A stretch of DNA of 64,000 nucleotides from Dimorphilus gyrociliatus (GCA_904063045.1 CAJFCJ010000019.1:2061700-2125699); one strand, 5' to 3'; positions 1-25,946 are shown, numbered from the stretch's first letter. Numbers and translations are program-made. Notes: generated from the letters alone by a model not told the origin.

Positions 1-832
1 GAAAACCCTGATAATGCTCAAGCAAATTCTTTCCAACAAATGTTAGCAAAATGATCCTTTTTAGAATACTATTCTTGATGCATTCCCTATTTGGGGAAAA
101 AAATTATAAGTTAATTATTACTTATTGCTAAAGCTGGCAGTGTATAAAATAGTCTTACTCCAGACGAAATAGACAACGGGGAACCCAAAACACTATACTA
201 AATATATGATACAGTAAATAGGTGAAAGCATTGTAAAGTGCACGTATTTTCCAGGGTTTAAGCATACACGAAGATGTGTCAATTACATCCAGAGAAATGT
301 TACACTTTTGAGAAACTTTTTGTTGTAGATGCAGGGCTCGACTAAGCTGGTTGACGTGTGTACCTTCCATGAGTTTTGTAGCATTTTCCCCATCATCTAT
401 CCAATCTGCAGCCGATTGCATCAACAAGGCAGACTGCTGTACATATTCTGCACTATATAATATAACCATTGCTTCACTACAATCCCAAACGGGGCTGAGA
501 TGAATAATTGGCACGTCGTCTTTTTTTCTACATGCAACAATCTCAAAGCGAACGATATATGAACTAATGATCGATGGTACTGTCAAATCATCATTTCTAA
601 ACCAAACTCCCAATTGTCTAATACTATAACCAAAGCCTTCACTCAGCTTGCTTTCTCGCAACCAATCTCTTATAGAACGAACATCTCCATTTCGAACAAT
701 ACCTGTCACACAAATTATTCTAGTCTTTCTATTGCTCCAACCGATAAGATTACCCGTAGGGGCATTCATACATTCATAAGGAATGTAAATCCTAACGATG
801 GGTTTGGGGTCATGAAATTCCCAGTTCGGCAT
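1..832 (-). CDS. PIGQ: GPI-GlcNAc transferase subunit Q (GPI1), 5' part; continues off the left edge
   Basis: The N-terminus 'RIYIPYECMNAPTGNLIGWS...ICVTGIV' resembles the PIGQ/Gpi1 N-terminus. Exon 832-159, GT-AG intron 158-87, then an open exon 86-1 (EECIKNSILKRIILL...). Confidence 0.7.
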
Positions 833-4069: not shown

Positions 4070-7000
4070 CTAGTATTTGACAGAAAGTGCTTTTGTTCTA
4101 CTTTTTCGTCCATAAATTGCTGATGTAGACGAAACTTTTGCAGACATAACGTACAACGATGCATACGTACTTGCTTTAACGTCTAAACACATTTTATATT
4201 GAGTTGGTTCAGTGATTAGATGACACAGAATTGGATGAAATACATGAACCATTCCAGGATCGATACTTCGCATTGTTTGAACATTATGTGTGGTAAATTT
4301 ATCATATAAATCCAAGTCTTCCTTTCCCCAACCCTCTATGGCAGTCAAAAAACCTCCAACATTATCCAAGTCCGATTTGTAGGCACACGCCATACCAAAT
4401 GAACTTTGTCTCCAATATCCCATACTCTCTTCAAATGAGAACAAATTATTACGTAGACTACACTTTCCACCATAAGAGCACCTGACTCCCGGATCAAATT
4501 GACTGAACATTATTGGATAATAGGCCTGAATATTTCTAATGGTATTTCGGGCCATTCTCTGTAAAACGTTTCTGCTTAAAATCAGATCCACGTCTACAAA
4601 ACAGACAAGATCTCTTTTAGCAAACAATTGAGCTCCTCTGTCAAGAGAAATTCCTCTTGAAAATTTGCCAGGAACCACAATCGATTGAATGTTATGATTT
4701 GGATATTGCTTAGCCAAATTCTTCATATGAAGCACCATATCATCAGTTCGATTTTCTGGATCAATAGCCGATAATACTATAACTATACTAACTCTCTCTT
4801 CACATTTAAGTGCAATTTCTTCGAAATTCCTCATAAAACGAAGATATGTCCTATATCGGCCGGACAGGGGCATAACGATGTTTAAAGTCTTCCCAATTCG
4901 GCCACAACTCGAATTTACTTTCGCTATTTTCGGCTTTTGAAAAATTCTGAATCCATCCGAGAACTTTTCTTTCAGACTTTCGAAAAATCCTTTGTTGGGA
5001 AGATCATCATTTACGGATACCAATCGGGATTGCAAACTGCCAAATGCCTGATGTGTTCCAAACTGGATTTTCCGAGATTTCTTCTTCTTCTGGAATTTGT
5101 AGTGCTGTTGAAATTGAAGTAAATGATCCACTCCAGAGAATGGATTTACTCGTTTGTACCCAAGCCGGAATTGACTTAGATCATTGTGATATCCTGTATG
5201 ATCTTCATTAACATTAACAATTCTATTTACTTCCTTTAATATCTTTCCCAAGCTCTCGTTAAATGTGGCTTGGAACTTTCTCTTCGGTACTTGATTATTT
5301 ATTGTAGCAATACTGTGACTATCAATGCTATCCCAAGGAATAACGTGCTCCCTAGTCTTTGGCTTAATTTTATTCCATGACGGTGGTTTGCTTACTCTGT
5401 TCTGCTCGCCATCACCAACTCTGAAATGATCGGAGATTGAACGTTTAATCTTTCTAGACTTGGCATGAATATCTCGTTCAATATGTTTGATTTTTCGTTG
5501 AATTTCAATTGTTTTATGATGGAGTTTCTTCAGATTTGTTGTTCTTAAGAAATTCTCCATTCGAAAAACGTATGTATCATTTTTTATTGGATGTAAAGTG
5601 ATGGCGTGCTCTATTTGATCTCTATCTTCTTCAAGTGAATGAGAGAAAGTTCCGGAACGTTCACGATAATTGAAATAGAATAGTTCTTTCATTTCGTAGT
5701 TGGATGAACATTGCGCGCCTGTTAGTTGAGTAATACAACGGCCGACTTCAACGTCTTCGTGTGTCGAGACAACATTATTAATACAATTATCGACGTATGG
5801 GCACATGGCTGATGACAGAAAAGAAACTCTTTCAGAATATTATTTCTTTCTTCAAGATCATTTCTATAAATGGAAATGTGCTGAGATTGAAATTTGTTTT
5901 TACCTTTCAGAGTAGCTCGACTGAGAAACATTCCAGGTCCACCCATGCAATAGGCGTAACCGGAAAGTCCTAATTTACCTTTTTTCTCCGCTCGTCCAAA
6001 CCCCGCTTGTCCAACATACAGCTGTTGAATATAAAGAGATATATGATTTTTGATGAAGTATAGAAACTTCTTTTTAATGAAGGAAGGAGACAAGAAATTA
6101 AAAATAAGTTGAATATGAATAGATAGGGTGGAGCCAATACAAATATACAAATATAAGATGGTTAGTTATAAGGCGTTGTAATAAATTGGAAATATTTTAA
6201 TTGTATTGAAAACGTTATGAAATACAGTACACACCCTCTTGTCGGAATCGATAGAATTTAGAAAAGGAACTAGCTTATCCATTTTGAAGTAAGCATCATC
6301 ATCGGCACGTAGAAACCAATCGTATTGATCGATATAATTATCGCACATATACTTGATCATTTTAAACGCCTTTTCTTGAGGAGGATAAACGCTATCATTG
6401 ACGCCTAAAATAAAACGAATAAATTAGAATATATTTATATAATAAGTGATTTTTTACAAAAACAATTGATAATTAATAAAAACAAGTGGAAAGAGAGAAT
6501 AAAGAAATCGGCTCATAATTCATTTGTAACAAAAATTTTAAAAGTAAAAACTAGACGAAAGACTAAAAAAGGAATCTACAGGCAGATCAAGATGTATAAC
6601 AGTATATGTAAGTGAGTTAATAATATAAATAGTAGGCCGTTGTTAAAAAGCTTTTGATGGTAATAATATCTAAAAATGTGAGCATTGTTTCCCATAATAA
6701 TTCATAAAATAGCTAAGTATGTCTATTATTTGGAATGAAGGACTTTTCCCTTGTGGCTGTACCTAAAAGCGAAAGTTCAGCAAGTACAGTAAGATCAAGT
6801 AGTAGGTAAATCAAATATCTTGTTTAATCCTGATTTTCATAATACTAATTAAACATACGTGTAATATAATATACAGTCAATAGAAGTAATTTAAAACGCC
6901 TTCGTAGTTGACAATAAAATCAGTAAAAATTACAAATGATCACCGCAATCTTTAATACTAAGGGAATTGATATGAGAAAGAGTGTCATTTTCTCTTCGTC

Positions 7001-7564
7001 TTATTTACTTTTCTTTTAATTTCTTGATACATTATTAAAAGAGGATAATAATTTTAATACTTTGAGTACAATAATAGATTAAATTATTATTCTTAGGTGT
7101 AGGAGTGTTGTTAGTCATATGACCGCACCTTAACCTTGTCTTTAATATTTTTATAATAACGTAAGATGAAAAAAATGCCTAAGGAAAATAAAATTATGCT
7201 TACCTTTCAAATTGACAACTCTTAGGTGATTTTCTCGCCAACTTCCAGTTTGGGCAAAATATTCTACTGTTGCATGTTGGCCCCAAGTTTTATTACACGC
7301 CGATGCTCTCGTTTTTAAGAACTTTCCAGCTGTCATTACAGCTACGAAAATAGTTTTTCTAGGTCGAAATTCATCAGGTTGGTTACTCGTAACAACCGAA
7401 TTGTCTTCCATTGATAAAATTTTCTCAGTTGTATCACAGACGAACGGTGTTATAGTATTACCAATTAAATATCCTATAAACACTCCAGTCAAGATATAAG
7501 CTGGATGTAACAACTGGAATTTCCCATTTCCTGCATTCCGTGATTGGCGCTCAGGTTCAATCAT
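4070..7564 (-). CDS. CHSY1: Chondroitin sulfate synthase (CHSY1/CHSY3-like), copy A
   Basis: Exons 7564-7204, 6404-6235, 6021-5904 and 5808-4070. N-terminal TM anchor, VAVMTA, YPPQEKAFKM, WFLRADDDAYF (fringe-like/GT31 domain), YCMGGPG, THEDVEVGRC, FVDVD (DxD) and GWGKED (GT7-like domain). Orthology to CHSY1 versus CHSY3 is not resolvable. Confidence 0.88.
4136..6003. repeat. Left arm of a 1,868-nt near-perfect inverted repeat (partner 18788-20655)
   Basis: The reverse complement matches 18788-20655 base for base except at 4150/20641, 4667/20124 and 4880/19911. The 95-nt intron 3 is included and identical. Confidence 0.97.
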
Positions 7565-7868
7565 ATCCTCTTTAATTTCTGCCTCAATTTTGCCGATTTT
7601 TCTGTTATACCTGTATTGAAATCTCCATGAAGAAATTCTTTTTATAGTTTATTATTCTAGTCTTAGAATTAAGCGTTCTTCTTTTGTTAAGTATCAGCAA
7701 ATTTTAATCACTATGAGTAATTCCCAAAACTATTATGGTAAAGTTATGACGCTCGCTTCAGGCTGGTAAGTGAAGGTATGAGGTTAAATTAAAATTTCTT
7801 CTATAAATCGCTATTGAGAAGTTGTAGGCCAAAAGGATCAATAAATTGGCCTTGGTTAGGTACTTAAG

Positions 7869-7896
7869 GTGGGGGGGGGAAGGGGGTTAGGGGGGG
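7869..7896 (+). other. G-run cluster, potential G-quadruplex
   Basis: GGTGGGGGGGGGAAGGGGGTTAGGGGGGG in a very AT-rich region upstream of CHSY copy A. Confidence 0.45.
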
Positions 7897-9056
7897 TGAA
7901 AGAGACAGTAAGCTGTGCAAGCATAGGCGAGGGGACGAAAGGAGACGAGATGAGGTGGATAGAAAAGATTATGTGTAAAATTAGAAAAGGATAACGCAAT
8001 GATTAACAATAATAAAAAAATCATAGAACGATTAAAGTATAAGAATTCTATACTAAACTACTGTAAAAAACATTCCATTTTAGTTAAAAATTCTTATACT
8101 TTTGTACTTGAAAATTATTAATAAATTATAAAGTATTAATAGATTAACCTTAATAAATTTAAATGTTATAATCTTACTTGTTATATCAAAAAATTAACAG
8201 CTAACAGTATCCAAACCCAAACTGTTCAAGGCTTTTTCAATCCCGTGCCTGTCTTTTTTTTAAGTTGAGTCTTACATATTAAACATAAACACATTACTAT
8301 GTGTGATGGCATATACAGTACATTTATATATATATACAGTATACTACTTTAACTCATCAAATCCTTAAAAGTGAAAGACAGGAGATTGAATGACAGAAAT
8401 TAGCGACAACTTTTTTCAACGTATAAATAAATATTTGGTCAGCCTTTTGGACAACTAAAGAAACGTGTTTGTTTGTAAATTTTTCTCTATAAGTTCACAA
8501 ATAACATGAAAAATAGTTAATTAAGACAATATTTTTCCAACTAAAAAGTATATTTTTGTAAGCCTATTTTAAAGGTTCTATCTAGGCTGTTGGCAAAAAA
8601 GTTAATACTAGTTTTAAGATATTATAGTCCTATGGCGGCGATGACGTATAAATAGTTGCATCTTGAAGAAAGGTAAAAAATATAGTATGAATTATGAACA
8701 TATGATTAGTTTATAGGTTTACTGTTTCTATTTAATTAGTATCTAAGGATTATTTTTAATTGAGTAAAATATATTGTCTTGATGTATGAATATATAAAAT
8801 GGGCACTATTGTCATTATCGTGTAAAAGTAACCGTCAAAAAGATTAAGAATAAAAGGAAAAATTATAATAATAAAAGGAATAAAACGATTGGCCAAAGAA
8901 CTTTCTTTGATCTTTAGATAAATAATGTGTAATTACTTCCCTTTCCACTGAATTTGGCACGGAAACTATCACAAAAATGCTAATCAAATAGAAATAAAAT
9001 TATTCAAATAGAAACTAAGAATATCTTGAAAAATTTTTTAATAAAACTTATAAAAG

Positions 9057-10780
9057 TTAATTCATTTGTCGATCGACAAATTGTTTAAATGAGCAATAAT
9101 TTTCCAACCATTTGGCAATATTTAATAGTTTAACATCATTCAAATATGGTGTAATTAATTGAAGGCCAATAGGTAAATTTTCTTTATTTAATCCCGTGGG
9201 AACGACAACAGCAGGAAGACCTGAAAGGAAAAAGAATACAATATAATTATCTTTCAGTCCGTATGATAAATCTATATTCTTTCTTCTCAGATATTTAAAT
9301 ATTTACCGGCCAGGTTAACCGTAATTGTATAAATATCATGATCTTGACTCTTAACTCTATTTCTGCTATCTTTAAACCAATCAAATCTAGGAGCTGGTTC
9401 AAGGACTGCTGGAGTTAGTAAAACATCTATTCCGGAATTAAAGGTATCGTTAAATTCGTTCGCAATTTTTCTTCGAACTTTTTGAGCTTTTTCGTAGTAT
9501 TTCTTGTAGTTTCTGTTCGTTTAAGGCAAAATATGATTATAGGCTAATAAAGAGTGTTTAAATATGCCTTTACCTTGATAATAGAAAATAATTTCCAGCT
9601 AATATTCTCTCCCTAACAGCGTCATTTAGACCTATTGCCCTAGTCGAGGCGTACAACTGTTCAGTGCTTTCACCATTTGATCTAAAACCATATTCTATAC
9701 CATCATAACGAGCCATGTTTGATGCCACTTCGGATTTACATAAAACGTAATAAGCGTCTATACCAAATTGAGTTGAGGGTAGAGATGCACTCACAACATT
9801 AGCACCAGCCCTTTCAAATTCGTCAGCAATTCTACTCCATTCATCTATAACTTCTCTACTTGTTCCAGGTGCGTGAAAATCGTAGGGAATACCAACATTT
9901 AGACCTTTAACAGATGGCTCTTCGTCTAACTGCACCTTGTCAACTGGCCTCTTAACAGATGTAGAATCCTTAGCATCCCATCCAGCAATAATATCCAAGA
10001 TGTAGGCTACGTCATCCACATATCTCGCAGCTATGCCGACTGTGTCCATAGAATTTTCCAAAGAAATGAGACCGTGTCTAGATATTAAACCATACGATGG
10101 CTTGTATCCTACAACTCCACAAAAACACGCTGGATTTCTTACGGATCCACCTGTATCCGATCCTAAGGCTGCAAAAACAGCTCCGCATGCTACAGACACA
10201 ATCGACCCTCCCGAACTACCTCCCGCAACACGATCTGTATTCCAGGGATTCCTTACTTCACCCATGTGACTTTCAACCGATCCTGCACCCATTGCAAATT
10301 CATCCATGTTTGTTTTGGCTAGAAGTAAACCACCAGCAGATAGTAATTTTTGAACTGCAGTAGCTGTATAATTTGGTACATAGTCGCTTAATATTCGACT
10401 GGCACATGTTGTCCGTATACCAGCTGTACTAAAATTATCCTTAACGGCTACAGGAATTCCGTGTAAAGGTCCTAACTCATCTCCACTTAATTCTATTCAT
10501 ATATAAAATAAATTTGGTAAATAATTTTTATAAATCGAATATTAATGTACCCTCTCTCTTAGCGTCTAAAGCGGCAGCTTTTATCTTACATAGTTCATCG
10601 TTTAATGTTACTATAGCTTGTAAGTCTTTAGCTTTTTCTACTCTTTCCAAGCACGTGTTTAGGAGTTGAGTACTCGTCAGAGATCCATTCTTCATAGATT
10701 TTACCGCCTAAAATGAATGTATATTTTCTAATTAGATAGAATCATCATATCGTTGAATGAATTAAAAACCTCAAAAATTG
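9057..10780 (-). CDS. QRSL1: Glutamyl-tRNA(Gln) amidotransferase subunit A, mitochondrial (GatA)
   Basis: Exons 10780-10760, 10707-10551, 10492-9574, 9502-9307 and 9220-9057. Amidase signature GIPVAVKDNF, KTNMDEFAMG, GGSSGGS, LGSDTGGSVRNPA, SNMARYDGIEYG, RILAGNYFL and VNLAGLPA. The Lys-Ser-Ser catalytic triad appears intact. Confidence 0.95.
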
Positions 10781-11217
10781 TTTTCTTCATATTTTGATTT
10801 TCAAGAAAGCGGTAAAATATAATTAAACTTTAATTTTATTTTTTATAAAAGTAAGGCTGTCTGCTACATTATTTGACCTTGACATTAATGATTATAGTTA
10901 TTATAAATTATTTTCCCCCTCTATTGAGAAAAATACTTAATGCTTAACCTATTTAAAAAGTTAAAATATCAATTTAAAATAACTTAACTATATTATAGAA
11001 AAATTATTTTGAATAAGACATTATATAACGAAAACATCGAAAATTTCCGTTCTATAATACATAGTTAGGAATAAGAGCAAATATAAAGATTGATAGCAAT
11101 CGTACTCTATTCAATTGTCCTTTCTTTTTAAGCAGTTGCTTAAAATGTTTTAACCTAGCCTAGAGCTGGCCCGTTCCATTCAATATTATGAATATTATGA
11201 TTTCAAAGTAGAAAATT

Positions 11218-11454
11218 ATGATTCATAATGCTATGTCGATTGTTACATTTGAATTGTGCTCTGCCTTGCTTGCTATAGAAATTTACAAACTTTTGAAAAG
11301 GTTTTCTATTAGAAAACATACACTACAAAAGATCGTGAAAGAAATAAAGAAAGGATACATAGCGATAGACTCCCAAAAGATGAATTTAGGAGCAGAAGAC
11401 CATAGAATAACAAAAAATTTTATAAAGAGAGTTGTAGAATTGGCGAATGTTTAA
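11218..11454 (+). CDS. Possible small orphan ORF (78 aa)
   Basis: ATG-started ORF in an otherwise very AT-rich intergenic gap, with a moderately hydrophobic N-terminus and basic C-terminal half. No homology recognised. Confidence 0.2.
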   Translation: MIHNAMSIVTFELCSALLAIEIYKLLKRFSIRKHTLQKIVKEIKKGYIAIDSQKMNLGAEDHRITKNFIKRVVELANV

Positions 11455-11495
11455 CTTTTTAATGTAAAATATTTAAAATATGTCCTTTTTCCGGT

Positions 11496-13917
11496 TCAAA
11501 GTTTAGCTTTAACATCTCCAATATTTTCGTATAAATTCTTCAAATCTTGTTTAAACATCTTTCTAACTGATGATCTTTTGATCTTGAACGTCGGAGTTAA
11601 TAATCCATCTTCTATAGTCAACTCTTTCTCTAAGAGTTTAATATTGGCAATCTGTGTTGAAATTAATGTATTAATACATCATAATTTAATTATTCGCTAT
11701 TCCATTATGTAATATTTGTTGTACCTGTTCAAATCCTTTAAGTTTTTCAATTTTTGCAATTCTACGTAAGTCAGATAAGATTAGCTTTCTGACTTTGTTA
11801 TCATTGCATAAAGTTTTCAAATCACACTGTAAACCGTTCTCTTTAGCCCATATTATTAAATTATCTACGTCAGGAACGACAAGGGCAATCGGATATCTTT
11901 GGAATGAGTCACCATCTACAAATATTTGACAAATAAAAGGACTAGAAAGATATAGCTTTTCCAATCTTTCTGGGGCAATATACTCTCCTTGTGCCATTTT
12001 GAAAACATGCTTCTTTCGATCAATAACTTTTAATGCACCCTCCTTAGACCATTCCCCAATATCGCCTGTATGGATAAATCCTTCTTCATCAATTGTTTCG
12101 GCTGTCTTTTCGGGTTTCTTGTAATATTCTTTCATTCTATATTTATGACGAACCAAAATTTCGCCTTGATTATTTTTAGCAAAATAATCCAGTTCCGGTA
12201 CATCAATTAATTTTACTTCGGAACCATACGAAGGTGGACCAATAGCTTTAGTGAATCTGTATTCATGCTTCAGTGTGGCAGCTATAGCAACGCCGCAATT
12301 TTCCGATTGACCATAAATATCAATTAAAGAACAACCAAAAGCGCATCTTATGAAATTAGCAATATAATCGGACAATGGAGCACCTCCGGAATATATTATC
12401 TCAATATTTCCTCCCAATAGATTTTGAAATTTCTTGAATAAAACTTTATCCCATATAGAATCCTTCATAACCCTTTCGTAATAATTCATGGATGCTTGCT
12501 TCCTAGAAAACGCAAAATCGAAAACACTTCTTTTGAATGACCCTGGAGGTAATTGAGCCATAATCTGTAGCGAGAATGTGTCAATGTATACATGCATAGT
12601 AAGATACGCCAAAGGTAAATATACCTTATCATGAATTTTATTTAAAACCCTAGGTGGAGCAATAAGAACATTTGGTTGAAGTGCTTGTATATCTAACACT
12701 AGATTTTCTTGTTGACCTCCCCAAAAGCCAATTTTTCCGCCATTAGACATAACACAAAGTTGTATTGTTCTCTCGAAAATATGTGCCAAGGGCAAATAGG
12801 ATAAATGAACATAACTCAAATTAGAAGTCAAAGATGTTTTAGCCGTTGTACTTGCATTGTTAACTATCGTTTTATGATCAATAACAACTCCTTTAGGATC
12901 ACCAGTAGTTCCACTAGTATATATAAGCATACAAATATTGTCAGGATTCGGTGGACATGGTTGTTTCGGGTGTTTTGAACCTAATTCTTCAACTTTATGA
13001 AGAGGAATAATCATAACTCCTTTATCAACCGCCAGTTTAACAATGTCATAATCAAGATATTCTTCTAAAACTACAATTATTTTGAGCGTATGCATCAATT
13101 CCTTATTCTTTAGATAAATCATGGCAATCTCCACCGATTCAACAATTACAGCTGGTAATTCAGCTATAAAAGGGCAGAAACAAAAACTATCAGTTTGGTA
13201 TTTAAATTACTTTCTCAAAAAAACCTTCATTAGCGATATAAGTATAAGTCGATTCCGGTTGAGCATCATATTGACCAATCACAACCGCAGAGAACATATG
13301 CAAAGCTCTTTCGCATAGAACCCACTTAAAAATCAAAAATCAAAGTATTTATGTATGAAGTTATATTAATATCGGGAAATAGAAAACTCACTTCAAGTCT
13401 TGTTTTAGCTACTATACCTACAAAACTGCCGGGAATAATGCCTATATGTTGAAAACCGGATGCTAGACATTTTGCTCTTTCAAATATCTGTTTGTAAGTA
13501 AACCATTCGAAAGGGGGTTCAGTAGCTGTCCTCTGACCTAAATACGGTTGATCACCTAAACGAGCCAAAACATATGTTTACAACGTTATATGAATATTTA
13601 AAAAAAAAAGATAAGAAAGAAATCAATGCAAATCGTTCTACCAAATTTTTCAACAGCATATAGAAATAATTCGTAAGTGGTTGGTGTTTCCACATCAAGT
13701 TCAATATTAAATTTGTTCAAATGAGAAACTCTCAGTCCATCCTGTTTTTTTAATTATATATATTAATTCTTTAATTGTTTTCCTTTAAACATTTACACAG
13801 TAAAATAACTATTAATCAAATATATTTTTATATAGTTTTTATAGAATGTAACTTACATTGTTTATAGTAGATTGTTTTTTTAGAGATATGTTTCTATATG
13901 CATCCTCTAAAGACATT
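11496..13917 (-). CDS. Long-chain fatty acyl-CoA synthetase (ACSL1/5/6-like)
   Basis: Exons 13917-13857, 13741-13642, 13555-13392, 13324-13225, 13163-12625, 12564-11725 and 11651-11496. AMP-binding motifs YTSGTTGDPKG, SYLPLAHIFER, YGQSE, HTGDIG, IDRKKHVFKMAQGEYIAPE and GLLTPTFKIKR. Confidence 0.93.
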
Positions 13918-14321
13918 TTGCGATCAGTTTTGTATGTAGAAAGGTCGATTGAAATTAAGCAAAGTACAACAAATATAAGTTCCTAATATCGGTCTCTGTT
14001 TATAACTAATATCAAAAAAGCGATAGAGTAGTAATTACTGATTAATATTTGGTGTTGCAACTGATAACAACTATTAAGATTGCAGGTGATCTATTTATTA
14101 TGCTTCCGAATAATCAAAGTATTAAGACATTGTAAAATTTGAACAATTTTCGGTACGAAATAGTATTGATAAAGTTGTGATTTGTAAAGGCTAGATTTTG
14201 GAATATGCGCCATCTATTGTTGTTTTAAGGAAAAGCTCACGCTACACTACTAATACCATACGAAAGAACTGAAAAAACTTTTCAGTTTTGACGAAAAATC
14301 GTATTGTAGCTATGACTAAGT

Positions 14322-14931
14322 ATGGCTGGTAGTGTGTTATTGAAAAGTTTTGCTAGAATTTCAGCAAATTTAGCTGAAAGAACATCAGTACAATGTGTTT
14401 CGGTAAGGTATGCAGGATACTGGAATAAAGATTGGAGGCCAGGTAAGACAACTATTTAATTGATTATCTTGAAGTGAGTGTAGGTTACCGTGACATTGAT
14501 TGTATTTTCAAATAGGACCCTATCCTGTTACTCCTGAGCAACGTGAAGCTGCAGCAAAAAAATATGGTCTGCGAGTAGAAGATTATGAGCCATACCCTGA
14601 AGATGGATTTGGATATGGTGACTATCCGAAGCTACCGTACACTTCGGCCGAATCCCGTGACCCTTATCAAAACTGGGATATACCTACAATGATGAGAAAT
14701 TATGGTGAACCAATGCATACTAATTGGGATATCATACAGGAGGATAAATGGGATGCTAGCCGAAGATGGCAAGTTCCACCATGGAAAATGGCTCTCATGT
14801 GCATTGGTAGTTTTGGTGGAATAATTTTGACATACTATTTGTTAGAACCTTATCCATTTTTTGTTCCTATGATGCCGAAACAATTCCCGGAAGAGGGTGT
14901 ACAACATTATACATTTAAAAGCCAGGATTAA
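14322..14931 (+). CDS. NDUFB8: NADH dehydrogenase 1 beta subcomplex subunit 8 (ASHI)
   Basis: Exons 14322-14442 (transit peptide, WNKDWRPG) and 14516-14931 (PYPVTPEQREAAAKKYGLRVEDYEPYPEDGFGYGDYPKLP, RDPY..WD, GEPMH, one TM helix, PKQFP). Confidence 0.95.
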
Positions 14932-15448
14932 TAGTTGTATTTAGTAAATTATGGTGTACAATAAAAAAACACACCAATCATTATCGCAATCATTTAATAT
15001 ACATTGTAGAGCAAGAGCGAGAAAGAAAGCACTATAAAGGGGAACGATGATAGAAGTTCTTGCGTTAAAATACATCTTCCAATTTTCTTAGGGTAGTTTC
15101 TCCGGAGCAGTTTGTAATAAATCATCTATGATGCCAGAGTATTTTTGGTGTCCTTATCGATATTTTTCCGAGGGTCGGAGTAGCACCAAAAATATTTATG
15201 TTTCCTTAAAACTATTGAGGAAATTAAAAAGTCAGCACCATAGCAAACCCAATTGTTCTGTAACTTTTCAAGAAGTTGAATATTATAATAATTCTCCTAA
15301 TGAAAGGTAATTTGACATTTTCAAGATAATGCAGGAGCCAATAATTTCTTCTGTAGGACTAATTCTTACTGCTTGATGTATTAGCCCTTTACAGATATAA
15401 AAAAAATCTTTACATTTGTTCTGTAAAAAATCTATGCAGAGTACTCAC

Positions 15449-16400
15449 CTTTTTATTACTTCTGACGAATTTTCACTCAGACTCCTCTCCCTGCGTGCTG
15501 ACAGTAATGGTCTTCTATGTTTATAGGTATTTTCTTCTCTGGCTGATTTCTCTTTTGCTTCCGATTCGGCCGTTCGCCTTTCATGATCAGCTTGTAAATT
15601 AGTTACTTGTTGTCTTAGTCGGTAGACTTCGTTTCTCAAACTGGCTGCACTAGAATCATCTTCAATATTATTTCTCGGTGAAGGAATATCTGTATGACCA
15701 TTTAATTGTTGTTGTAAACGTCTTTTCTCGGATTCAAGAGTACTCATTCGTTTCCAAAGTCTATTAACTAGAGCCTCTTGTTCGTGCTCCAGCTCGTTTT
15801 CTAATTGAACTTTATCGCGACGTAGCTCCTCTAGCAAAGCTTGTTTATGTTTTATATCGGCTTCGAGGCGTTCGGTATTCTTTTTAAGTTTATTTATTTC
15901 CTTTTGTTGTTCGTGTTCTAGAGTTGTTTCTAGGGTTTGCTTCTCCTGCTGGAGTTGAAAGAGTTTTCGGCTGAGATCATTCGTGAGGCATTCTTCTTCC
16001 TGTTCGTATTTCATTGCCAATTCTTCCTTGTCTTTCTTGAGGGTTTCAATGGTTTTTAAAAGGGTATTCGATATAAATTCTTCTTCTTGCTCAGCACGAG
16101 CTTGCTAAAAATTTACGTTAAATGATTTTGTTAAAGTATACTTTTAAAAATATTCATAAAATAAAAAAAATAACGAACTATTGAAACACTGGCCCTTCTT
16201 AGTCGAACATTATCATCTTCGAGTGTCTTTACTCTTTGTTTATACTTTTCCAGCTCTGTTTTAAGGACAACGTTCTCTTGTTGAAGCGATTCCATTCTCC
16301 TCTGCATGTACTCAATATGATTAGGAGTCATCAGTCGGGCTGTTGGGCCGTCATTCATGGAATTTGTATCGCTTTCTAATTCACTAGCACTATCAGCCAT
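15449..16400 (-). CDS. CCDC6: CCDC6 copy B, with a divergent C-terminus (terminal exon not resolved)
   Basis: Exons 16400-16179 and 16104-15449. Nearly identical to copy A until ...AREEN, then unrelated sequence (TYKHRRPLLSARRERSLSENSSEVIKR). GTGAGT donor at 15448. Confidence 0.88.
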
Positions 16401-17748
16401 ATTTTGGGTGTTACTAAATCATGAGTGATAATCAGGTGAATAGTCTCAAAACATATTTAATATCATTTTATAAAAATGTATGATATTTATCAAAAGCTAG
16501 AGACTAATATTAAACTATTAGCGGGAATGTAAAACTTTTAGAAAAGGCATTAATTAATTATTTCTACACGTACAATTAGATACATAATTAAACAAGTCTT
16601 CGAAAGATAATTTACTGTTATAAATTGTCTTTTTTATTTAGATATTCTACCGTTAAACTCTATTAATAGTGCCTAATTAAAGAAAGAAAATATAGATTTA
16701 CACTTATTACTCGAAATCTAATTAATCTTGTAGTTGATATCGATAACGAGTTGAAAACAGCGTTGTTTTTTTTTTATTTTTTTTTAAACAGATGTTCTTT
16801 TTTTTAATAGATTAGATAAAATAATTTTAAAAATTAAATAAAATATTAATGTCATAATAAAACGAAAGAACTTCAAAGGCAATGTACTATTTAATGATTA
16901 ACAACAATAACAACAACAACGACAAAGCTTTGTTTTGGTATTATTTTGTATAGGTAAAGCCTAATCCTTATACTTATGCCCACTCATGAAAATGAGTCAA
17001 ATAGAAACTGTTTTTTGTGATCGACTATAACTATGAAAATTTCGACATATATGGTCTTATTACTATGCTTATATTAATATTATATATATAACAGTAGTGC
17101 GGTTTGTTGTAAACAACACATTAGTACTTAATGTTATCCTATTGGCTAAGAGAAAGTATAAGGTGGGACATTTGTATCTACGGAAGGTGTCAATTTAGTG
17201 AATGGTTTAGGTAATTCATAATGTTTTTTCAGGTCAAAGTGATCTTAAACTCATTTTTAATGAGAAAATATAAATGTATATATATATATATATCCTGTAT
17301 ATTCAAGAAGAGCCGCCAAAGCAGGCCAGTCTTTGAAAAAAATCAATTCCTCTTTCACCAAATAATCTTTGAAAGGTTTCAAATCATATTAATATGGCCC
17401 ATTTTTACTATATATATTTCTTGATCGATCGGTCATTTCATTCAACTATAAGGAATAGGCTATATTCTGTTTTTAATATATTTACCGCTTCCATTTCTCT
17501 CTGTCTTCTAAATCTATTTCTTCTTAATTCTTCTTCTACTTCAATTTTTCTTCTGCTTCAACGTTTAGTCATCTCACTTTAAAATTTAATATCGAAAGAA
17601 ATTAAAAAAGGAGAACCTGCAAAAATAAACTGAAAAGACTGCAAATATCCTGTGGATGAAGACAAAATCTTCAAGATATGATTTCTATATCTTTCTTTCG
17701 GATGGGCTATTTGACAAGTTGAGAAAAAGAAAATAATTTATCGCAGTT

Positions 17749-20727
17749 ATGCATGTTAGTAAAAAAATGAAAACTAATCTTTTACATCCTGCATATATAT
17801 TATTTGGAGTATTTATCGGATATTTAATGGGTAGTTCAATGAGCAGCTTCATATGCTTTCAACCTAGAGCAAAGTCCAATAGAATTTATAACTTACAAGC
17901 TTCTGAAGAAAATCTCAGACCGAGAAAAACACTCTTTGTTGCTGTTATGACAGCAAGGAAATTTTTAGAGACTAGGGCAAAAGCCTGTAATAATACATGG
18001 GGACAGCATACTACTGTACAGTATTTTGCACAAACCGGAAGTTTGAAAGAAAATGGTCTAGATATTGTCAATTTACCAGGTAATATAAATCCCTTGTCTA
18101 AATTAACAGCTTAAATGTTACTGTTTAATAAATTTAAATATTCATCGCTTTGCAGTTAATACATATAAATAAATAACTATTTCTTTTTATTATTATTTAT
18201 TTCTTAACAAAAGTGATAAAAATAAATAAATAAATCCTATGTCACTATGTTGTAAAGTTTTCAATCTCAACGACTTAAACAGATTTTCTATTATAAATAG
18301 CTGTAATTATTGCTAAGCCTTTTTCTATCAACAAAAAAGTTTAAAGAGTTGAATGAACTTCGACAGGGATCGATGACAATGTCTACCCTCCACAAGAAAA
18401 AGCATTTAAAATGATCAAGTATATGTGTGATAAATATGTGGATCAATTCGATTGGTTTCTACGTGCCGATGATGATGCTTACTTTAGAATGGATAAGCTA
18501 GTTCCTTTTTTAAATTCTCTCAATGCTAGTGAAAAGGTTTGTGGATTATTTTCAATTGCCTACTTATCTTTCCTTTAAACGCCCTTAAAATCAAGACACT
18601 ATTCCTCCTCCTTATTAATTAACAGAAATATTTTCTATACATTTGTAGTTTCATACGAAAGAGATTTTACCTTGCTAAAATCTACTCTTCACTAAAGCTA
18701 TTTCTTTTATCATTTATTTAAAGTGGCATTACCTTCTAATGCAGTATTATCTTTATTCCTTACAAACAGTTATACGTAGGACAAGCAGGGTTTGGACGAG
18801 CGGAGAAAAAAGGTAAATTAGGACTTTCCGGTTACGCCTATTGCATGGGTGGACCTGGAATGTTTCTCAGTCGAGCTACTCTGAAAGGTAAAAACAAATT
18901 TCAATCTCAGCACATTTCCATTTATAGAAATGATCTTGAAGAAAGAAATAATATTCTGAAAGAGTTTCTTTTCTGTCATCAGCCATGTGCCCATACGTCG
19001 ATAATTGTATTAATAATGTTGTCTCGACACACGAAGACGTTGAAGTCGGCCGTTGTATTACTCAACTAACAGGCGCGCAATGTTCATCCAACTACGAAAT
19101 GAAAGAACTATTCTATTTCAATTATCGTGAACGTTCCGGAACTTTCTCTCATTCACTTGAAGAAGATAGAGATCAAATAGAGCACGCCATCACTTTACAT
19201 CCAATAAAAAATGATACATACGTTTTTCGAATGGAGAATTTCTTAAGAACAACAAATCTGAAGAAACTCCATCATAAAACAATTGAAATTCAACGAAAAA
19301 TCAAACATATTGAACGAGATATTCATGCCAAGTCTAGAAAGATTAAACGTTCAATCTCCGATCATTTCAGAGTTGGTGATGGCGAGCAGAACAGAGTAAG
19401 CAAACCACCGTCATGGAATAAAATTAAGCCAAAGACTAGGGAGCACGTTATTCCTTGGGATAGCATTGATAGTCACAGTATTGCTACAATAAATAATCAA
19501 GTACCGAAGAGAAAGTTCCAAGCCACATTTAACGAGAGCTTGGGAAAGATATTAAAGGAAGTAAATAGAATTGTTAATGTTAATGAAGATCATACAGGAT
19601 ATCACAATGATCTAAGTCAATTCCGGCTTGGGTACAAACGAGTAAATCCATTCTCTGGAGTGGATCATTTACTTCAATTTCAACAGCACTACAAATTCCA
19701 GAAGAAGAAGAAATCTCGGAAAATCCAGTTTGGAACACATCAGGCATTTGGCAGTTTGCAATCCCGATTGGTATCCGTAAATGATGATCTTCCCAACAAA
19801 GGATTTTTCGAAAGTCTGAAAGAAAAGTTCTCGGATGGATTCAGAATTTTTCAAAAGCCGAAAATAGCGAAAGTAAATTCGAGTTGTGGCCGAATTGGGA
19901 AGACTTTAAATATCGTTATGCCCCTGTCCGGCCGATATAGGACATATCTTCGTTTTATGAGGAATTTCGAAGAAATTGCACTTAAATGTGAAGAGAGAGT
20001 TAGTATAGTTATAGTATTATCGGCTATTGATCCAGAAAATCGAACTGATGATATGGTGCTTCATATGAAGAATTTGGCTAAGCAATATCCAAATCATAAC
20101 ATTCAATCGATTGTGGTTCCTGGTAAATTTTCAAGAGGAATTTCTCTTGACAGAGGAGCTCAATTGTTTGCTAAAAGAGATCTTGTCTGTTTTGTAGACG
20201 TGGATCTGATTTTAAGCAGAAACGTTTTACAGAGAATGGCCCGAAATACCATTAGAAATATTCAGGCCTATTATCCAATAATGTTCAGTCAATTTGATCC
20301 GGGAGTCAGGTGCTCTTATGGTGGAAAGTGTAGTCTACGTAATAATTTGTTCTCATTTGAAGAGAGTATGGGATATTGGAGACAAAGTTCATTTGGTATG
20401 GCGTGTGCCTACAAATCGGACTTGGATAATGTTGGAGGTTTTTTGACTGCCATAGAGGGTTGGGGAAAGGAAGACTTGGATTTATATGATAAATTTACCA
20501 CACATAATGTTCAAACAATGCGAAGTATCGATCCTGGAATGGTTCATGTATTTCATCCAATTCTGTGTCATCTAATCACTGAACCAACTCAATATAAAAT
20601 GTGTTTAGACGTTAAAGCAAGTACGTATGCATCGTTGTACATTATGTCTGCAAAATTGATGGAATATACTTCAATCTACCGGTTGAAGAGAAAGATAGAC
20701 TCCAATAAATTTTCTAAAAAAGTATAA
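17749..20727 (+). CDS. CHSY1: Chondroitin sulfate synthase, copy B (inverted paralog)
   Basis: Exons 17749-18079, 18367-18536, 18770-18887 and 18983-20727. Same exon structure and motifs as copy A. Confidence 0.88.
18788..20655. repeat. Right arm of the 1,868-nt inverted repeat (partner 4136-6003)
   Basis: Line-by-line comparison with the reverse complement of 4136-6003 gave 3 mismatches. Confidence 0.97.
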
Positions 20728-21575
20728 GAAACTCTTTTAAAAAGGATTGGTACATAAGAGAGAAAAATAATGGAATATGTTCTAAAAAGTCTAATTTGCA
20801 TTTTATTTTACGTCTAAATCTCAATGTTAAAAGTAAATTGTTATTTGAATGTGGTAAAATGAATGAAAAGTGCCAATTTGTTATAGTTCATTGATGTTTT
20901 ATATTTTGAAAAGGTTTCAGTCGAAAAAAGAAATTATATGAAATTATATTCATACTGGAATTATTGACAATTAAAAATTTTTTGATGAATACTGAGGTTT
21001 ATTGAAGTAATTTCATTAATAGTTTATGGTTGACTAATTTCAAAAGGGTAAACACAGTATACTTGCTTGTAAACAGAAATTTTTATTTTTTTTCCTTTTA
21101 TGAAAAGGACAGGAGAAAAGACTTATTCTTTATGAATAATTATGAAAAATGTTAACTTTAAAATACATAAAAAAGAAAGATGGATCATAGTTTACTAGTT
21201 AACTAATCGGTGAATTTTCATATCTTTTCAATATTGTTAATATTATATTTTTGTTAGAATATCCGTCATTCTCATCTTAGTTCTCCCCGCCCCCTGCTTC
21301 GTCTAACTTCCTCTCTGGCTAACCTAAGCCTATATATCTCATAGTATTGAAGATTTTTAAAAGGAAACTGGTTTCTTTTATCAATAGATTCAGCTCATTT
21401 TAGGCTTTTGTATATTTTTTAAAAAGTGATTGTACACGGTATAATATTAAAGTTTCTTCAACTACGCACAAACCGATTATATATATATTAGTATATACAT
21501 ATAGATATATGTATATTTATATATATATTCATATATACATATATAGGATGTGTATGGAGTACTTATGCTCTACTA

Positions 21576-24500
21576 ATGAATCGTAATTTAAGTAATCCCT
21601 ATTCTTCCTCATCATTTTTATCTAGAATAACTTTTTGGTAAGTTAATATATATATATAGACAGTATACAGATTGGTTATGATATTTCGAATATAATTCAC
21701 GGATAAATGAACAGGTGGGTAAGGCAGTTATATTGGGACAGTAATAAACTTGAAAATTGGAAATATGTACAAACAACTTACAAACATAGTAGTTGTAAAT
21801 TGCATAATGATTTTCAAAAAAATTTCCCTTTGATGCTCTTGAGAAGGTGAGAGAAATACTCTTGTTTATCCAGTTTAAAAAATGCTTAATCATTATTTTT
21901 ATAGTCAAACGGATAATGATGAAAATAGGAAGAAAAACTGCAAAAGCTTATGGCGCTTTATCATAACTAGTCAATTTTTAGAAATATGTTTTGCTTTTAT
22001 ATTAAACATTTTTCGCGTACGTATTCTATGTAATTAATATGTTAATTTATTCATAATCAAGTTTCTTTATTTAGGACATTGTTAATCTTATACTACCATT
22101 CCTATATATGTGGTTAATGCAAATTATATTACATAAGGATAGCGATAACCGTTCATTTGGTTATTATGTTGCCGGCGGTATGGGATTATGCCAATTAATG
22201 TATTGTATAACAAATATGCATTCGCATTTTTTGGCTGAAAAAAGTGGATTAAAGCTCCGTTCATTATTAACATGTGCAGTGTATAATAAGGTAGATATAG
22301 TGTTTTGTAGATTCTCTTTTCAAGAGATTATCATACTGTGTAACCCCTTTTTACGAAAATTACAGATCTTTTATACAAGCTATAAAGCAGAAGATATTGT
22401 TAATGGCTCTATATTAGGTTTAATTGAAAGAGAGTTAGAGAAAACAACTGATTTTTATGGTCTTCTAATTGAAGTAACTGGAATACCATTTTCTGTTTGT
22501 ATTGTCTCGTTTGGAATATTCTATTTTAATGGTCCATATACCGTTGTTTGCATCCTCTCTCTATCGGTATTTTTCATTGGTCTAATATGTTTTTGCATGA
22601 AGAAAGAGAATAGTTTCAAGGAAAAAATGAGAGAATATACCGACAATAGATTATTTCTTGTTGGAGAGATAATTGACGGAATCAAAACCATTAAATTAAA
22701 TGTTTGGGACGATCGTTTCTTTCAAATTGTTACTAAAATAAGAAAATTGGAAACCAAAGGCCTATTTTATTCTTTTATATTTAGAATATTCCATCTTACA
22801 TTGTCATTCTGTGCATCTAAAATTATCTTAATGTTATCACTGCTAATTTTGATGATCTTATCGAAATTTGAATTTTCACTTATTAGTTTATTCCTTATCA
22901 TTGTTCTCATCACAACAATTGAGTACAGGCTATTTGTACAATTTCCAAAACTTGCCCTAGGATTATCTGATTGCTGCGAGAGTATCAAAAGGATTCAGGT
23001 AAATGTTAATTATTCTTTATTCATTAGAATCTTCCGTAAAATAATCCAATTTATTCAAGAATTTCCTATTCGATGATCTATCGTTAAAATCAGAAGATCC
23101 TTGTTCCCGATTAACAACTCCTAAACCAGCTAGGGGTGGTAATATTTTCATAGAAATGAGAAACGGCCACATCGCAAGAGATGTAAGAGATTCTCAATTG
23201 CTAGAAGATTGATAACTAAAAATTTAAAAATAAATCCATTTTCAGTCCTACTACGAATCGGAAAAGGATAAAAACAAATACATATTAAAGAATGCTAATC
23301 TAAAAATAGAAGAGGGAAGATCTTTTGGTATAGTGGGAAGTCCTGAATCTGGAAAGGTAAGTGAAAGATTTTTAAACATATATCAATACGCGTTAATTTA
23401 TCATTTTTCATTTTAATAGACGGCTCTTGTTCTTTCTCTTCTTAAAGAAAGACAATTGGAAAAAGGAAGGTTAGAATGCTTCGGAAAATTAAGTTACGCC
23501 GCTCAAATTCCCTGGATATTTAATGCAACTTTGAGAGAAAATATCATTATGGGATGGAATTTCTGTGAAGAGAAATACATGAAAGTTTTATCAGTATGCA
23601 AATTAAATGACGTAAGTTTATTACCGAATTTATGAGTGATTGATTAGATCATTTTAGAAAAAAATTGTCTATTAGGATATTACTAGACTCCATTTGGGGG
23701 ATCAGACGATTTTGGGAACAGAAATCGCGTTGACGCCATCATTAAAGGCCCGAATATCTTTAGCTAGGTAATACATTGAGTAAAAAAATTCCTTATCATT
23801 TAGATATTAAATGATTGCCTAATTAACAGGGCTATATATAGAGAAGCTGATATATATATTTTAGACGAACCATTAGAGTGCATCAATAAAGATGAAGCAA
23901 AAGGAATACTTGATCTATGTATCTTTGGATATCTTCGTCAAAAAACAACTATTCTAGTATCTAATCAAATAGAATATTTAGAAAAGATTGATGTCCTATA
24001 TTTAATGGATAATTGTAAATTGAAACAAATAAGGAGATACTCAGATTTAATGTCTAGACCTCATATTGCGAAAAGTACACCAAATTTTGAAGGAATGGTC
24101 AAATCGGAAGCGTGGGTGGTCTCGGAAGAAAAAGGTCTTGTCGGTACAAAGACTTATGTAAATTACGCAAGATCTGGGAATGTGGGACTTTTTGCGTTAT
24201 GCATACTATTCTTGATGATTATGTTCTCTCTAAAGGTCTTTATAGACGTTACTCTTGCCGAACTCTTAATTAACGCATCTCTAAAGTTTGATAGTGGAAT
24301 TTTCAAATTATATAGCGGATTCTTTATATTAGTTATATTGATTGCCGTGTCTTTCGTAGCACAATTATGCATGCACAACTTTTTTATGAAAACCTGTCAA
24401 AATTTTCACAAGAGGATGCTCAAATCAATTCTGCATTGTAAGATGGACTTTTTTGCTAAAAATCCAAAGCATGAGATCCTCTCTCGTTTTGGAAAGGATA

Positions 24501-25946
24501 TCGGAATCCTTGATAATCTATTACCTAGCTATTTTGAACGTTGTATATCCGATTTTTTGTGCTTAGTTTGTGGCGTTGTGGTGGCAATGATGGTCGTTCC
24601 TCTATTGACACTAGCCTTCCTACTTTTAATTGTCATCTTAATCATTGTCTATAAATTCTTGGCTGGAAAGATCGTTACTCTGAAAAGAATGGGATCAAAG
24701 AGCAAACTACAATGTGTCCAATTATATGTCGATGTACTACAAGGTTTAATAAGCATTAGAGCTTTATCGAGTAACAGTCATTTTTTAACCAAAATGTACA
24801 AAGCAATGGATTCAAGATTCAACCTAGAATTCTTTCATTGTGCCGGACTTAGATGGTTGCAACTATGGATGAACATTTTAATGGTTATCTTCCAAACTTT
24901 AACTTGCCTAAGCTTTGTTTTCTATATGGATACTATAAATTCATTATACGTTGCTCTCGCCTTGGTTTATCTCCTTTTTACAACTGATTCATTTTTTGGT
25001 TGCTTTCGAAGAGCTATTGAATTAGAAACTTCTGTAAGTATAACTAGAAACTCTTCGCCATCTAATTATCTTATAATCTTATTTAGATGAGTTCTGTCAA
25101 AAAAATTCAAGCATACGCAGCCACGGAAGCTGAAGAAAACCGTGAAACTATACAAAAACCAACAGTTTGGCCGACTGATGGTGTTTTAATTGTCAATAAC
25201 TTAACTTTACACTTGGACGATTATAATCAAAACGTTCTGGATGGGGTAAATATGTATGTTTGTCAAGGTCAAAAGGTGAGTAGTACCATAAATCTACAAC
25301 TTTACTGAGTAAATAATCTGCAAATGTATTTCAATAGATTGCAGTTGTAGGTACAACTGGGTCAGGTAAATCTTGGCTAATGCCAGCGATTTTTCAAATG
25401 GTTAAATCATCCGGACGTATTATATTAGATTCTGTCGATATATTAAAATTGTCTGTTCAAGAGGCTAGAAAACCTATTTCCGCAATTCCAAGAGATCCAT
25501 TCCTCTTTTACACAACTATTAAAGGCAATCTGGATCCTCTAAACCAGTTTACTGACTTTGAACTATGGAAAGTTTTAGAGAACGTTCAGCTGGCCGCCAA
25601 AATCAGATCAATGCCTTCGCAATTAGAAACTGTTATCAGTAATAATGATGGTTCCTTCTCAAACAGACAAAAACAATTATTATGTCTGGCTCAAGCCCTG
25701 TTAGGAAAGACCTATCTTATCGTTATTGAAGAATCTGCAGACGATAAAGAAGATGCGTCTGATGCGATAATCCAATACGTTATATCGAGGCATTTGAAGC
25801 ACTGTTCAGTAATTATCATTGCCAGTAAACTGAAGAGTATCAGGGAGTGTGATAAAATCTACGTTTTTGGTAATGGTAGGATTATCGAAGAAGGAACATT
25901 TGACTCTTTATTATCGCTTGGTGGACTTTTTAGACAATTAGTTTGA
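21576..25946 (+). CDS. ABCC/MRP-family short-type (ABCC4-like) transporter with degenerate NBDs, about 1,224 aa
   Basis: Twelve exons: 21576-21637, 21715-21846, 21905-22016, 22075-22290, 22366-22998, 23060-23182, 23246-23356, 23420-23611, 23676-23767, 23830-25033, 25087-25275 and 25338-25946 (sum 3,675 nt, in frame). Lasso start NPYSSSSFLSRITFWW, KSLWRFI, GLKLRSLLTCAVYNK, KTIKLNVW, YAAQIPWIFNATLRENI, FF..NP...ILSRF.KD, WPTDG, GTTGSGKS and NLDPLNQFTD.ELWKVLE.VQL. Confidence 0.88.

Follow-up and report, generated by a model that had tools for sequence, protein, structure and literature searches.

Ectopic gene conversion has been described for the palindromes of the primate Y chromosome and for the mammalian genes TLR1 and TLR6, where it is restricted to a part of the protein. 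Inverted repeats also flank recurrent inversions in the human genome, as found at FLNA-EMD and at F8 int22h. The locus described here is located in a window of 64,000 nucleotides from Dimorphilus gyrociliatus (CAJFCJ010000019.1:2061700-2125699; the window denotes the whole stretch of DNA that was analysed) and comprises two inverted paralogs predicted to encode chondroitin synthases. It resembles the Y palindromes and TLR1/TLR6 in that a sharply bounded, near-identical tract including non-coding sequence is embedded in much older duplicates, and in that one part of the protein is homogenised while the remainder diverges. It differs from them in the small size of the tract (1.87 kb), in the compact 78-Mb annelid genome and in the gene family affected, which is a family of glycosyltransferases. 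With FLNA-EMD and F8 int22h the locus shares high-identity inverted repeats around a gene-bearing spacer, an arrangement in which the recombination that homogenises the repeats can also invert the spacer; here, however, the arms consist of exons that code for parts of two proteins, so that inversion would swap the C-terminal tails between the genes. In the literature that we searched, no paper connects chondroitin synthase to gene conversion, and the D. gyrociliatus genome paper mentions neither.

Results

Splice junctions and reading frames define two genes of the CHSY type of chondroitin synthase. Gene A (4070–7564, minus strand) encodes 795 amino acids in exons 1 (7204–7564), 2 (6235–6404), 3 (5904–6021) and 4 (4070–5808), and gene B (17749–20727, plus strand) encodes 787 amino acids in exons 1 (17749–18079), 2 (18367–18536), 3 (18770–18887) and 4 (18983–20727). 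Both four-exon genes are intact, with an uninterrupted reading frame, GT-AG splice sites at every intron and conservation at catalytic positions, and they are arranged head-to-head with approximately 12.8 kb separating the near-identical tracts. All four exons were covered in tblastn searches with homologs, and full-length homologs align through exons 1–3. In the D. gyrociliatus genome, which carries at least nine CHGN-family loci, the heads of A and B are mutually the closest paralogs (60% and 80% amino acid identity; the runners-up reach 41% and 63%), and a word-based protein search returned best matches outside this species that are about 35% identical. Two faulty public gene models were identified at the locus. 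DgyrCDS11788 is truncated and represents only the 3′ part of gene A; DgyrCDS11793, which in tblastn matches exons 2 and 4 of gene B with >95% identity and begins with the first residues of exon 1, is fused onward to the downstream neighbouring ABCC gene. The near-identical arms may have confused the mapping of evidence on which these models were built.

Profile and homology searches were carried out exon by exon. Both copies matched the Pfam family CHGN (PF05679) with 410.5 bits, compared to a gathering cut-off of 23, over profile positions 2–509 of 512 (gene A, 1.5e-122). Fringe matches reached 18–20 bits, just below the 21-bit cut-off, because exons 1 and 2 were scanned separately. Exon 2 of both copies contains a DDD motif as counterpart of the GT31 DxD motif, and a hydrophobic segment of 26 residues follows a short N-terminus in the alignment of both. 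Human CHSY3 matched exon 4 with E = 1.5e-98, far better than CHPF (2e-15). The predicted architecture is the same as that of human CHSY1 and CHSY3 (PDB codes 9q8z_B and 9o4g_A), namely a putative type II anchor, a stem, a GT31 GlcA-transferase, a middle domain and a GT7 GalNAc-transferase, although identity with the human enzymes is only ~33–35% and the tail in D. gyrociliatus is short and differs between the copies. Residues were mapped by alignment to 9o4g_A, with CHSY3 numbering corresponding to the chain index + 31. CHSY3 residues D342, H394, K397, D718/D720, E806/D807 and H831 are kept in D. gyrociliatus, and H834 is replaced by leucine. Those which separate active CHSY1/3 from inactive CHPF and CHPF2, i.e. 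D342, H394, D718/D720, D807 and H831 (PMC12748766), are thereby all conserved in the alignment to 9o4g_A. Genes A and B are thus predicted from their sequences to encode CHSY1/3-type chondroitin synthases.

A repeat search revealed inverted arms at 4136–6026 and 18765–20655, which differ at 8 of 1,891 nt when compared base by base. Only three of these mismatches (4150, 4667 and 4880 in gene A coordinates) fall into the 1,868 positions of 4136–6003 (gene A arm, minus strand) and 18788–20655 (gene B arm, plus strand), as reported in the first-pass annotation; the remaining five are found in 6004–6021. The 95-nt intron 3, also described there as identical, shows 0 differences in 95 positions (5809–5903 and 18888–18982). 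The tract begins at codon 7 of exon 3, spans the whole of intron 3 and continues in exon 4 until 66 nt before the stop in gene A, and just two copies of it exist in the 77.9-Mb assembly. In a GENECONV-type test, the longest mismatch-free run was 1,123 nt as compared to a maximum of 216 in 20,000 permutations (0/20,000), and at the mismatch rate of the flanking exons (0.22) the binomial probability of at most three mismatches in 1,868 nt is ~1e-197; a chance origin of the identity is excluded. As reasons for the identity of the intron, an Rfam match was sought in 1–24000 and none was found, and no relevant tandem repeat was seen. A signal of GC-biased conversion was absent, with a GC3 of 0.32 in the tract, 0.24–0.39 in the heads and 0.25–0.30 in neighbouring genes. 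All three sites show transitions, of which two are synonymous, and no indels; gene A carries G or C and gene B carries A or T at each of them, a number too small to name the donor.

Outside the tract, the copies are strongly diverged. Calculated by exon, dS is ~2.5 (saturated) in exon 1 versus 0.006 in the tract, where dN is 0.001 (557 exon 4 codons) and no difference was found in the 33 exon 3 codons. Mismatches amount to 44/162 nt in exon 1, 29/170 nt in exon 2 and 5/18 nt at the start of exon 3, and blastn identities between the copies are ~73–83% for exon 1 and 88% for exon 2. Introns 1 (799 nt in gene A, 287 nt in gene B) and 2 (213 and 233 nt) have the lengths given earlier, and the claim that they are unalignable was confirmed by alignments no better than those of shuffled sequences. 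As the most conserved catalytic parts are encoded by the tract, one could argue that extreme purifying selection holds the 3′ halves identical without any exchange of sequence. Selection on the protein, however, cannot fix ~342 synonymous sites, at which only two differences were found, nor an intron of 95 nt, and an equally conserved catalytic stretch of exon 1 has saturated synonymous sites. Purifying selection alone is refuted by these synonymous-site and intron data, and the probability left to it is negligible.

The 5′ boundary of the tract does not coincide with the junction of intron 2 and exon 3 but lies 18 nt inside exon 3, past the acceptor. This edge is sharp: the first six codons of exon 3 (6004–6021, minus strand, in gene A; 18770–18787 in gene B) contain five differences, all of them synonymous, and their synonymous sites have all changed (72% identity). 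On the 3′ side, the tract ends at a diverged C-terminal tail of 21 amino acids plus stop in gene A (4070–4135, minus strand) and 23 amino acids plus stop in gene B (20656–20727). The alignment with homologs ends ~7 codons ahead of this boundary, and in the 600 nt past it the copies align no better than shuffled sequence. The last ~22–24 residues had been considered unrelated; they rather appear weakly related, with an I-Y-x-R-like motif common to A, B and the paralog P0011 and a nucleotide alignment of the tails that scores only slightly above shuffled sequence (20 of 500). The occurrence of the motif in P0011 and the marginally non-random tail alignment also argue, if weakly, against the 3′ edge as the original duplication breakpoint, which it probably is not.

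The scarcity of alignable sequence past the edges (72% identity over 18 nt at the 5′ edge, and nothing that could be aligned at the 3′ edge) would be accounted for by a recent homology-independent partial duplication, e.g. by replication template switching, in which a 1.87-kb piece was copied onto the paralog and replaced its 3′ part. Synthesis-dependent annealing with outside homology arms is hard to picture because the flanks are barely alignable today. The junctions nevertheless show no seam, keep the frame and follow the order of the paralog's own exon structure, which is not expected of a homology-independent event, and neither insertion scars nor target duplications were found at 4136/20655 or 6003/18788. 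Although such a duplication and conversion are indistinguishable in their outcome, we consider the former unlikely.

The assembly is based on self-corrected PacBio RSII reads (PBcR) processed with Quiver, Pilon using 101-nt Illumina reads, HaploMerger2 and SSPACE (reads PRJEB37657). In an assembly that was self-corrected, repeatedly polished and merged, there might be one true arm only, or read correction or consensus calling might have erased the differences between diverged arms; the use of PacBio RSII/PBcR data with Quiver and Pilon polishing could at least have slightly inflated the exact identity of the tract. Both arms, however, are located in a single gap-free contig and have unique flanks each, with no N in the window. 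A repeat of 1.9 kb is shorter than the typical P6-C4 read length, which also counts against an artefact. Polishing should be unable to generate 99.8% identity, because sequences that are 73–88% identical do not cross-map. The three residual transitions, two of them synonymous, indicate that the copies are distinct, and since they are transitions unaccompanied by indels they suggest genuine mutations and not errors of the PacBio consensus. Both edges of the tract are in frame within exons and both genes are left intact, which likewise speaks against an artefact, and we regard this explanation as quite improbable.

The 12.8-kb segment between the arms (6004–18787) was characterised by ORFs and Pfam matches and contains both gene heads, an amidase, an acyl-CoA synthetase, NDUFB8 and copy 2 of a CCDC6-like gene. 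Its geometry permits a programmed or polymorphic invertible cassette, in which the arms serve to flip the segment and thereby re-pair heads with tails: crossover between the arms inverts 6004–18787, swapping only the last 21–23 amino acids and the 3′ UTR and leaving all genes intact, and crossover and conversion have common intermediates. Yet neither a recombinase nor a recognition site is apparent, the arms are plain coding sequence, the assembly shows one orientation only, and the positions of the CCDC6-like copies give no sign of a past flip. That the arms serve such a purpose is therefore highly improbable; a passive inversion polymorphism is plausible, whereas a programmed switch is not supported. 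The CCDC6-like copies form an adjacent inverted pair, for which both one large inverted block and a past flip were considered; copy order and orientation are compatible neither with a simple inverted block nor with a flip by way of either repeat. This pair is also a patchwork, which we counted in favour of the recurrent exchange considered in the Discussion.

Conversion had been proposed to homogenise the GT7-like half of the enzyme, while the anchor, the stem and most of the fringe-like half evolve separately. The whole GT7 domain is indeed inside the tract, as is the whole middle domain. When mapped on human CHSY3, ~47% of GT31 is inside the tract as well, and this part carries the catalytic base and the His that binds Mn (PMC12748766); the ~53% outside includes the DxD motif, so that “most” is an overstatement. 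The proposed difference in TM and stem holds for the stem and the cytoplasmic end, but the membrane anchor is conserved, at 18 of its 26 residues in a count by eye. The two predicted enzymes would therefore have the second half of GT31, the dimerisation domain in the middle and all of GT7 in common, while the cytoplasmic end, the stem, the GT31 half that binds the donor and the last 21–23 residues would be specific to each.

Discussion

The first-pass annotation had attributed the tract to ectopic gene conversion between inverted repeats on old paralogs, and all sequence-internal tests fit this claim. DNA-templated ectopic gene conversion is very probably the best explanation of the locus. An old duplication would have given rise to the two chondroitin synthase genes, which are now arranged head-to-head. 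A DNA break within exons 3–4 of one copy may then have been repaired by homologous recombination from the inverted paralog ~12.8 kb away on the same chromosome, and this repair would have replaced 1.87 kb, intron 3 included, by the partner sequence. As an intron lies within the tract, the template would have been DNA and not cDNA. The tract nearly fills the contiguous block of homology, which is bounded by two putative heterology barriers: intron 2, which cannot be aligned, on one side and the C-terminal tail, which is free of constraint, on the other. The tract itself, its edges, the contrast in age and the intactness of both genes are shown by the sequence; the repair mechanism and the recurrence considered below are inferred. 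The process itself is ordinary and well known, and the locus is a clean single example of it.

A possible older and shorter conversion patch with low synonymous divergence is located in the middle of exon 2 (6253–6366, minus strand, in gene A; 18405–18518 in gene B). Its 38 codons have a dS of 0.21, in contrast to saturated synonymous sites at either end of the exon (pS 0.90–0.98); the probability of such a patch is ~6e-6 for a window chosen post hoc, and it could alternatively reflect constraint at the nucleotide level. Recurrent conversion is somewhat favoured over a single first-time event, because exon 2 holds this patch of intermediate age and because the longest perfect runs in the unconverted exons (≤36 nt) are too short for efficient first-time recombination, as is known from minimal homology requirements. 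The long 3′ block may have stayed similar enough to go on recombining, whereas the short 5′ exons, split by indel-ridden introns, would have escaped and diverged. One can speculate further, if only tentatively, that the tract is the surviving core of a long-term, domain-restricted concerted evolution between heterology barriers, which keeps one catalytic body for two synthases differing in Golgi anchor and stem, donor-binding GT31 half and tail. The arms might then also maintain an inversion polymorphism of 12.8 kb, by which heads and tails are re-assorted, and together with the CCDC6-like case this would point to an unusually active ectopic recombination in a genome as compact as this one.

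The locus provides a textbook-clean conversion tract with sharp bounds, in a spiralian whose genome is compact. Paralog trees calculated from whole CHSY proteins of D. gyrociliatus would mislead, since ancient heads are joined to bodies that look very recent. The two genes presumably represent a natural domain-swap pair, in which the same GalNAc-transferase and dimerisation body is combined with different anchor ends, stems, donor-binding halves and tails, and which lends itself to questions on the role of these variable regions. A single case of this kind is ordinary; if reads confirmed several such tracts in D. gyrociliatus, it would become possible to address how often ectopic recombination occurs in a miniaturised genome.

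A near-identical tract in two diverged paralogs

The two head-to-head CHSY-type chondroitin synthase paralogs, gene A (4070-7564, minus strand) and gene B (17749-20727, plus strand), share a nearly identical block in inverted orientation. A repeat search of the window delimited the arms as 4136-6026 and 18765-20655, and base-by-base comparison of their 1,891 nt found eight mismatches, five of them clustered in 6004-6021. Only three, all transitions, fall within 4136-6003 (gene A coordinates 4150, 4667 and 4880), which confirms the first-pass annotation of three mismatches in 1,868 positions against 18788-20655. A search of the genome of the annelid Dimorphilus gyrociliatus (77.9 Mb, 349 contigs), in which the window is C19:2061700-2125699, identified exactly two copies of this tract, and self-comparison of the 64-kb window revealed no other repeats apart from a CCDC6-like pair.

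Gene A was reconstructed from splice sites and reading frames as exons 7564-7204, 6404-6235, 6021-5904 and 5808-4070, separated by introns of 799, 213 and 95 nt and encoding 795 aa. The corresponding exons of gene B (17749-18079, 18367-18536, 18770-18887 and 18983-20727) are separated by introns of 287, 233 and 95 nt and encode 787 aa. All introns are GT-AG with phases in agreement, the lengths annotated earlier for introns 1 and 2 are exact, and both gene structures confirm that intron 3 is identical in A and B. The public models of both genes are faulty. DgyrCDS11788 (593 aa; 4070-5946), to which the exon 4 protein of gene A is 100% identical, has its first Met within exon 3 and lacks exons 1 and 2. 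DgyrCDS11793 (1,872 aa; 17749-25943) begins inside exon 1 of gene B, at an internal Met, and tblastn places it on exons 2 and 4; from there it runs on into the ABCC transporter gene downstream, with which it forms a fusion. The sequence separating gene B from the ABCC gene contains a (TA)n microsatellite (21478-21545) with some 34 units; a 225-aa ORF at 155-832 (minus strand) had no Pfam match at E <= 0.001.

Family assignment

Each exon was searched separately rather than as spliced protein. Exon 4 matched Pfam CHGN (1.5e-122) and Glyco_transf_7C, and exons 1 and 2, scanned singly, gave Fringe matches below threshold. The best solved structure for exon 4 was human CHSY3 (E = 1.5e-98), with CHPF far behind (2e-15). 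Residues were mapped onto CHSY3 by alignment to 9o4g_A (chain index + 31), with roles taken from PMC12748766. In the GT31 domain, the catalytic base D342, the Mn ligand H394 (PMC12748766) and K397 are conserved, and both copies have DDD in exon 2 where CHSY3 has the DxD motif (D261/D263). The GT7 domain retains D718/D720, E806/D807 and H831, the sole substitution being Leu for H834. Judged from these conserved catalytic residues, A and B look like active bifunctional synthases of the CHSY1/3 type.

The genome holds at least nine CHGN-family loci. The at least seven further CHSY/CHPF/CSGALNACT-like loci in the 78-Mb genome lie at assembly coordinates C1:1660601, C1:2329000-2331350, C2:3691839, C3:1364216, C4:2354211, C6:3250267 and C7:1666533; the C6 locus is an apparently intronless open frame of 730 aa. 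The heads (exons 1 and 2) of A and B are mutual closest relatives in the genome, with 60% identity in exon 1 (next best 41%) and 80% in exon 2 (next best 63%).

Evidence for a probable gene conversion

Nei-Gojobori estimates differed sharply along the genes. In exon 1, dS was saturated at ~2.5 (dN 0.33; catalytic part 0.16), and exon 2 gave dS 0.71 and dN 0.11. The first six codons of exon 3 carry five synonymous differences on 4.7 synonymous sites (dN 0), the remainder of exon 3 none of either kind (dS and dN 0), and exon 4 up to 4136 gave dS 0.006 (two synonymous differences) and dN 0.001 (one Val/Ile change). Beyond the tract, blastn of the two loci recovered only three pieces, part of exon 2 (88%) and parts of exon 1 (73% and 83%); introns 1 and 2, which had been described as unalignable, and 600 nt past the 3' edge aligned no better than shuffles. 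If mismatches arose at the flanking rate of 0.22, a stretch of 1,868 nt would carry no more than three with a probability of ~1e-197. In a GENECONV-style test the longest mismatch-free stretch measured 1,123 nt, and none of 20,000 permutations produced one above 216.

Selection at the protein level as the cause is ruled out by the identity of synonymous sites and intron. An assembly artefact is highly improbable: both arms lie on the same contig, the window contains no N, each arm has unique flanks, and the repeat is shorter than typical PacBio reads. The assembly was built from PacBio RSII reads with PBcR, Quiver and Pilon, and later HaploMerger2 and SSPACE (PMC7854359). Polishing would hardly turn sequences of 73-88% identity into identical ones, and the transitions that survive also argue against it. 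The tract sequence is thus copied between the genes, and the template was DNA because intron 3 is included. Exon-wise dS and a conversion test, both proposed in the first-pass annotation, support its reading of ectopic conversion between old inverted paralogs, with corrections.

Boundaries and affected domains

The 5' edge adjoins the unalignable intron 2 but lies 18 nt inside exon 3, so that the intron/exon junction was rejected as the boundary. At its 3' side the tract ends 66 nt (A) or 72 nt (B) short of the stop codon, seven codons past the point where all homologs cease to align. In human CHSY3 the matching region is part of a disordered stretch, the C-terminal 48 residues, that may contact the acceptor site (PMC12748766). 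The tails beyond (21 aa in A, 23 aa in B) are very diverged, as annotated, but not plainly unrelated: both share an I-Y-x-R-like motif with paralog P0011, and their DNA is marginally alignable (observed score reached by 20 of 500 shuffles). We read them as probably homologous but saturated, which would mean that the old duplication ran beyond the tract. The tract hence takes up nearly all of the contiguous homology, with a heterology barrier on either side; edges of this kind would be expected if heterology halted branch migration or heteroduplex extension.

If exon 3 aligns without gaps, as it does in the homolog alignments, the tract starts near CHSY3 residue 291. About 53% of GT31 (CHSY3 residues 173-395), with the donor-binding residues and DxD motif, lies outside, and about 47%, with the catalytic base and His, inside together with the whole middle (dimerisation) and GT7 domains. 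Homogenisation of GT7 therefore stands, but separate evolution of "most" of the fringe-like half was too strong a claim. Similarly, the cytoplasmic end and stem are unrelated between A and B, with indels, as the annotated stem difference implied, but conservation extends to the membrane anchor, where a count by eye on the alignment gives 18 of 26 residues.

Recurrence and inversion

Exon 2 also has a mosaic structure: dS is 0.21 across the 38 central codons (gene A 6366-6253), and both ends are saturated (pS 0.90-0.98; P ~6e-6 for a stretch chosen post hoc). Perfect runs in the unconverted exons reach at most 36 nt. Owing to minimal homology requirements and mismatch-repair rejection, such divergence makes homologous repair very inefficient, which would also have applied had exons 3 and 4 diverged likewise and so favours repeated conversion. 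Against this, GC3 in the tract (0.32) shows no excess of the kind that GC-biased conversion leaves. On balance we lean slightly towards repeated conversion over a single event; repetition would have kept the long 3' block similar throughout, with the short 5' exons escaping it.

Since the arms are inverted, a crossover between them would flip 6004-18787, which contains both heads, an amidase exon (9570-10307, minus), an acyl-CoA synthetase (11686-13568, minus), NDUFB8 (14500-14931, plus) and the second CCDC6-like copy. The CCDC6-like inverted pair (Pfam DUF2046; 1113-2052, plus, and 15529-16454, minus) shows dS 0.12 in exon 1 and 0.18 in exon 2 and is patchy, with a 219-nt perfect run and clustered mismatches (6 within 21 nt, 21 within 61 nt). 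Its intron of ~80 nt aligns poorly, homology fades at 2052/15529 and the C-terminus of copy 2 differs; the pair may be a second conversion mosaic. A passive inversion polymorphism of 6004-18787 is plausible, and nothing supports a programmed switch. For the synthases, an arm-to-arm flip would swap only tails and 3' UTRs. The tract adds a new, clean case to a well-known class of events and is of modest significance.
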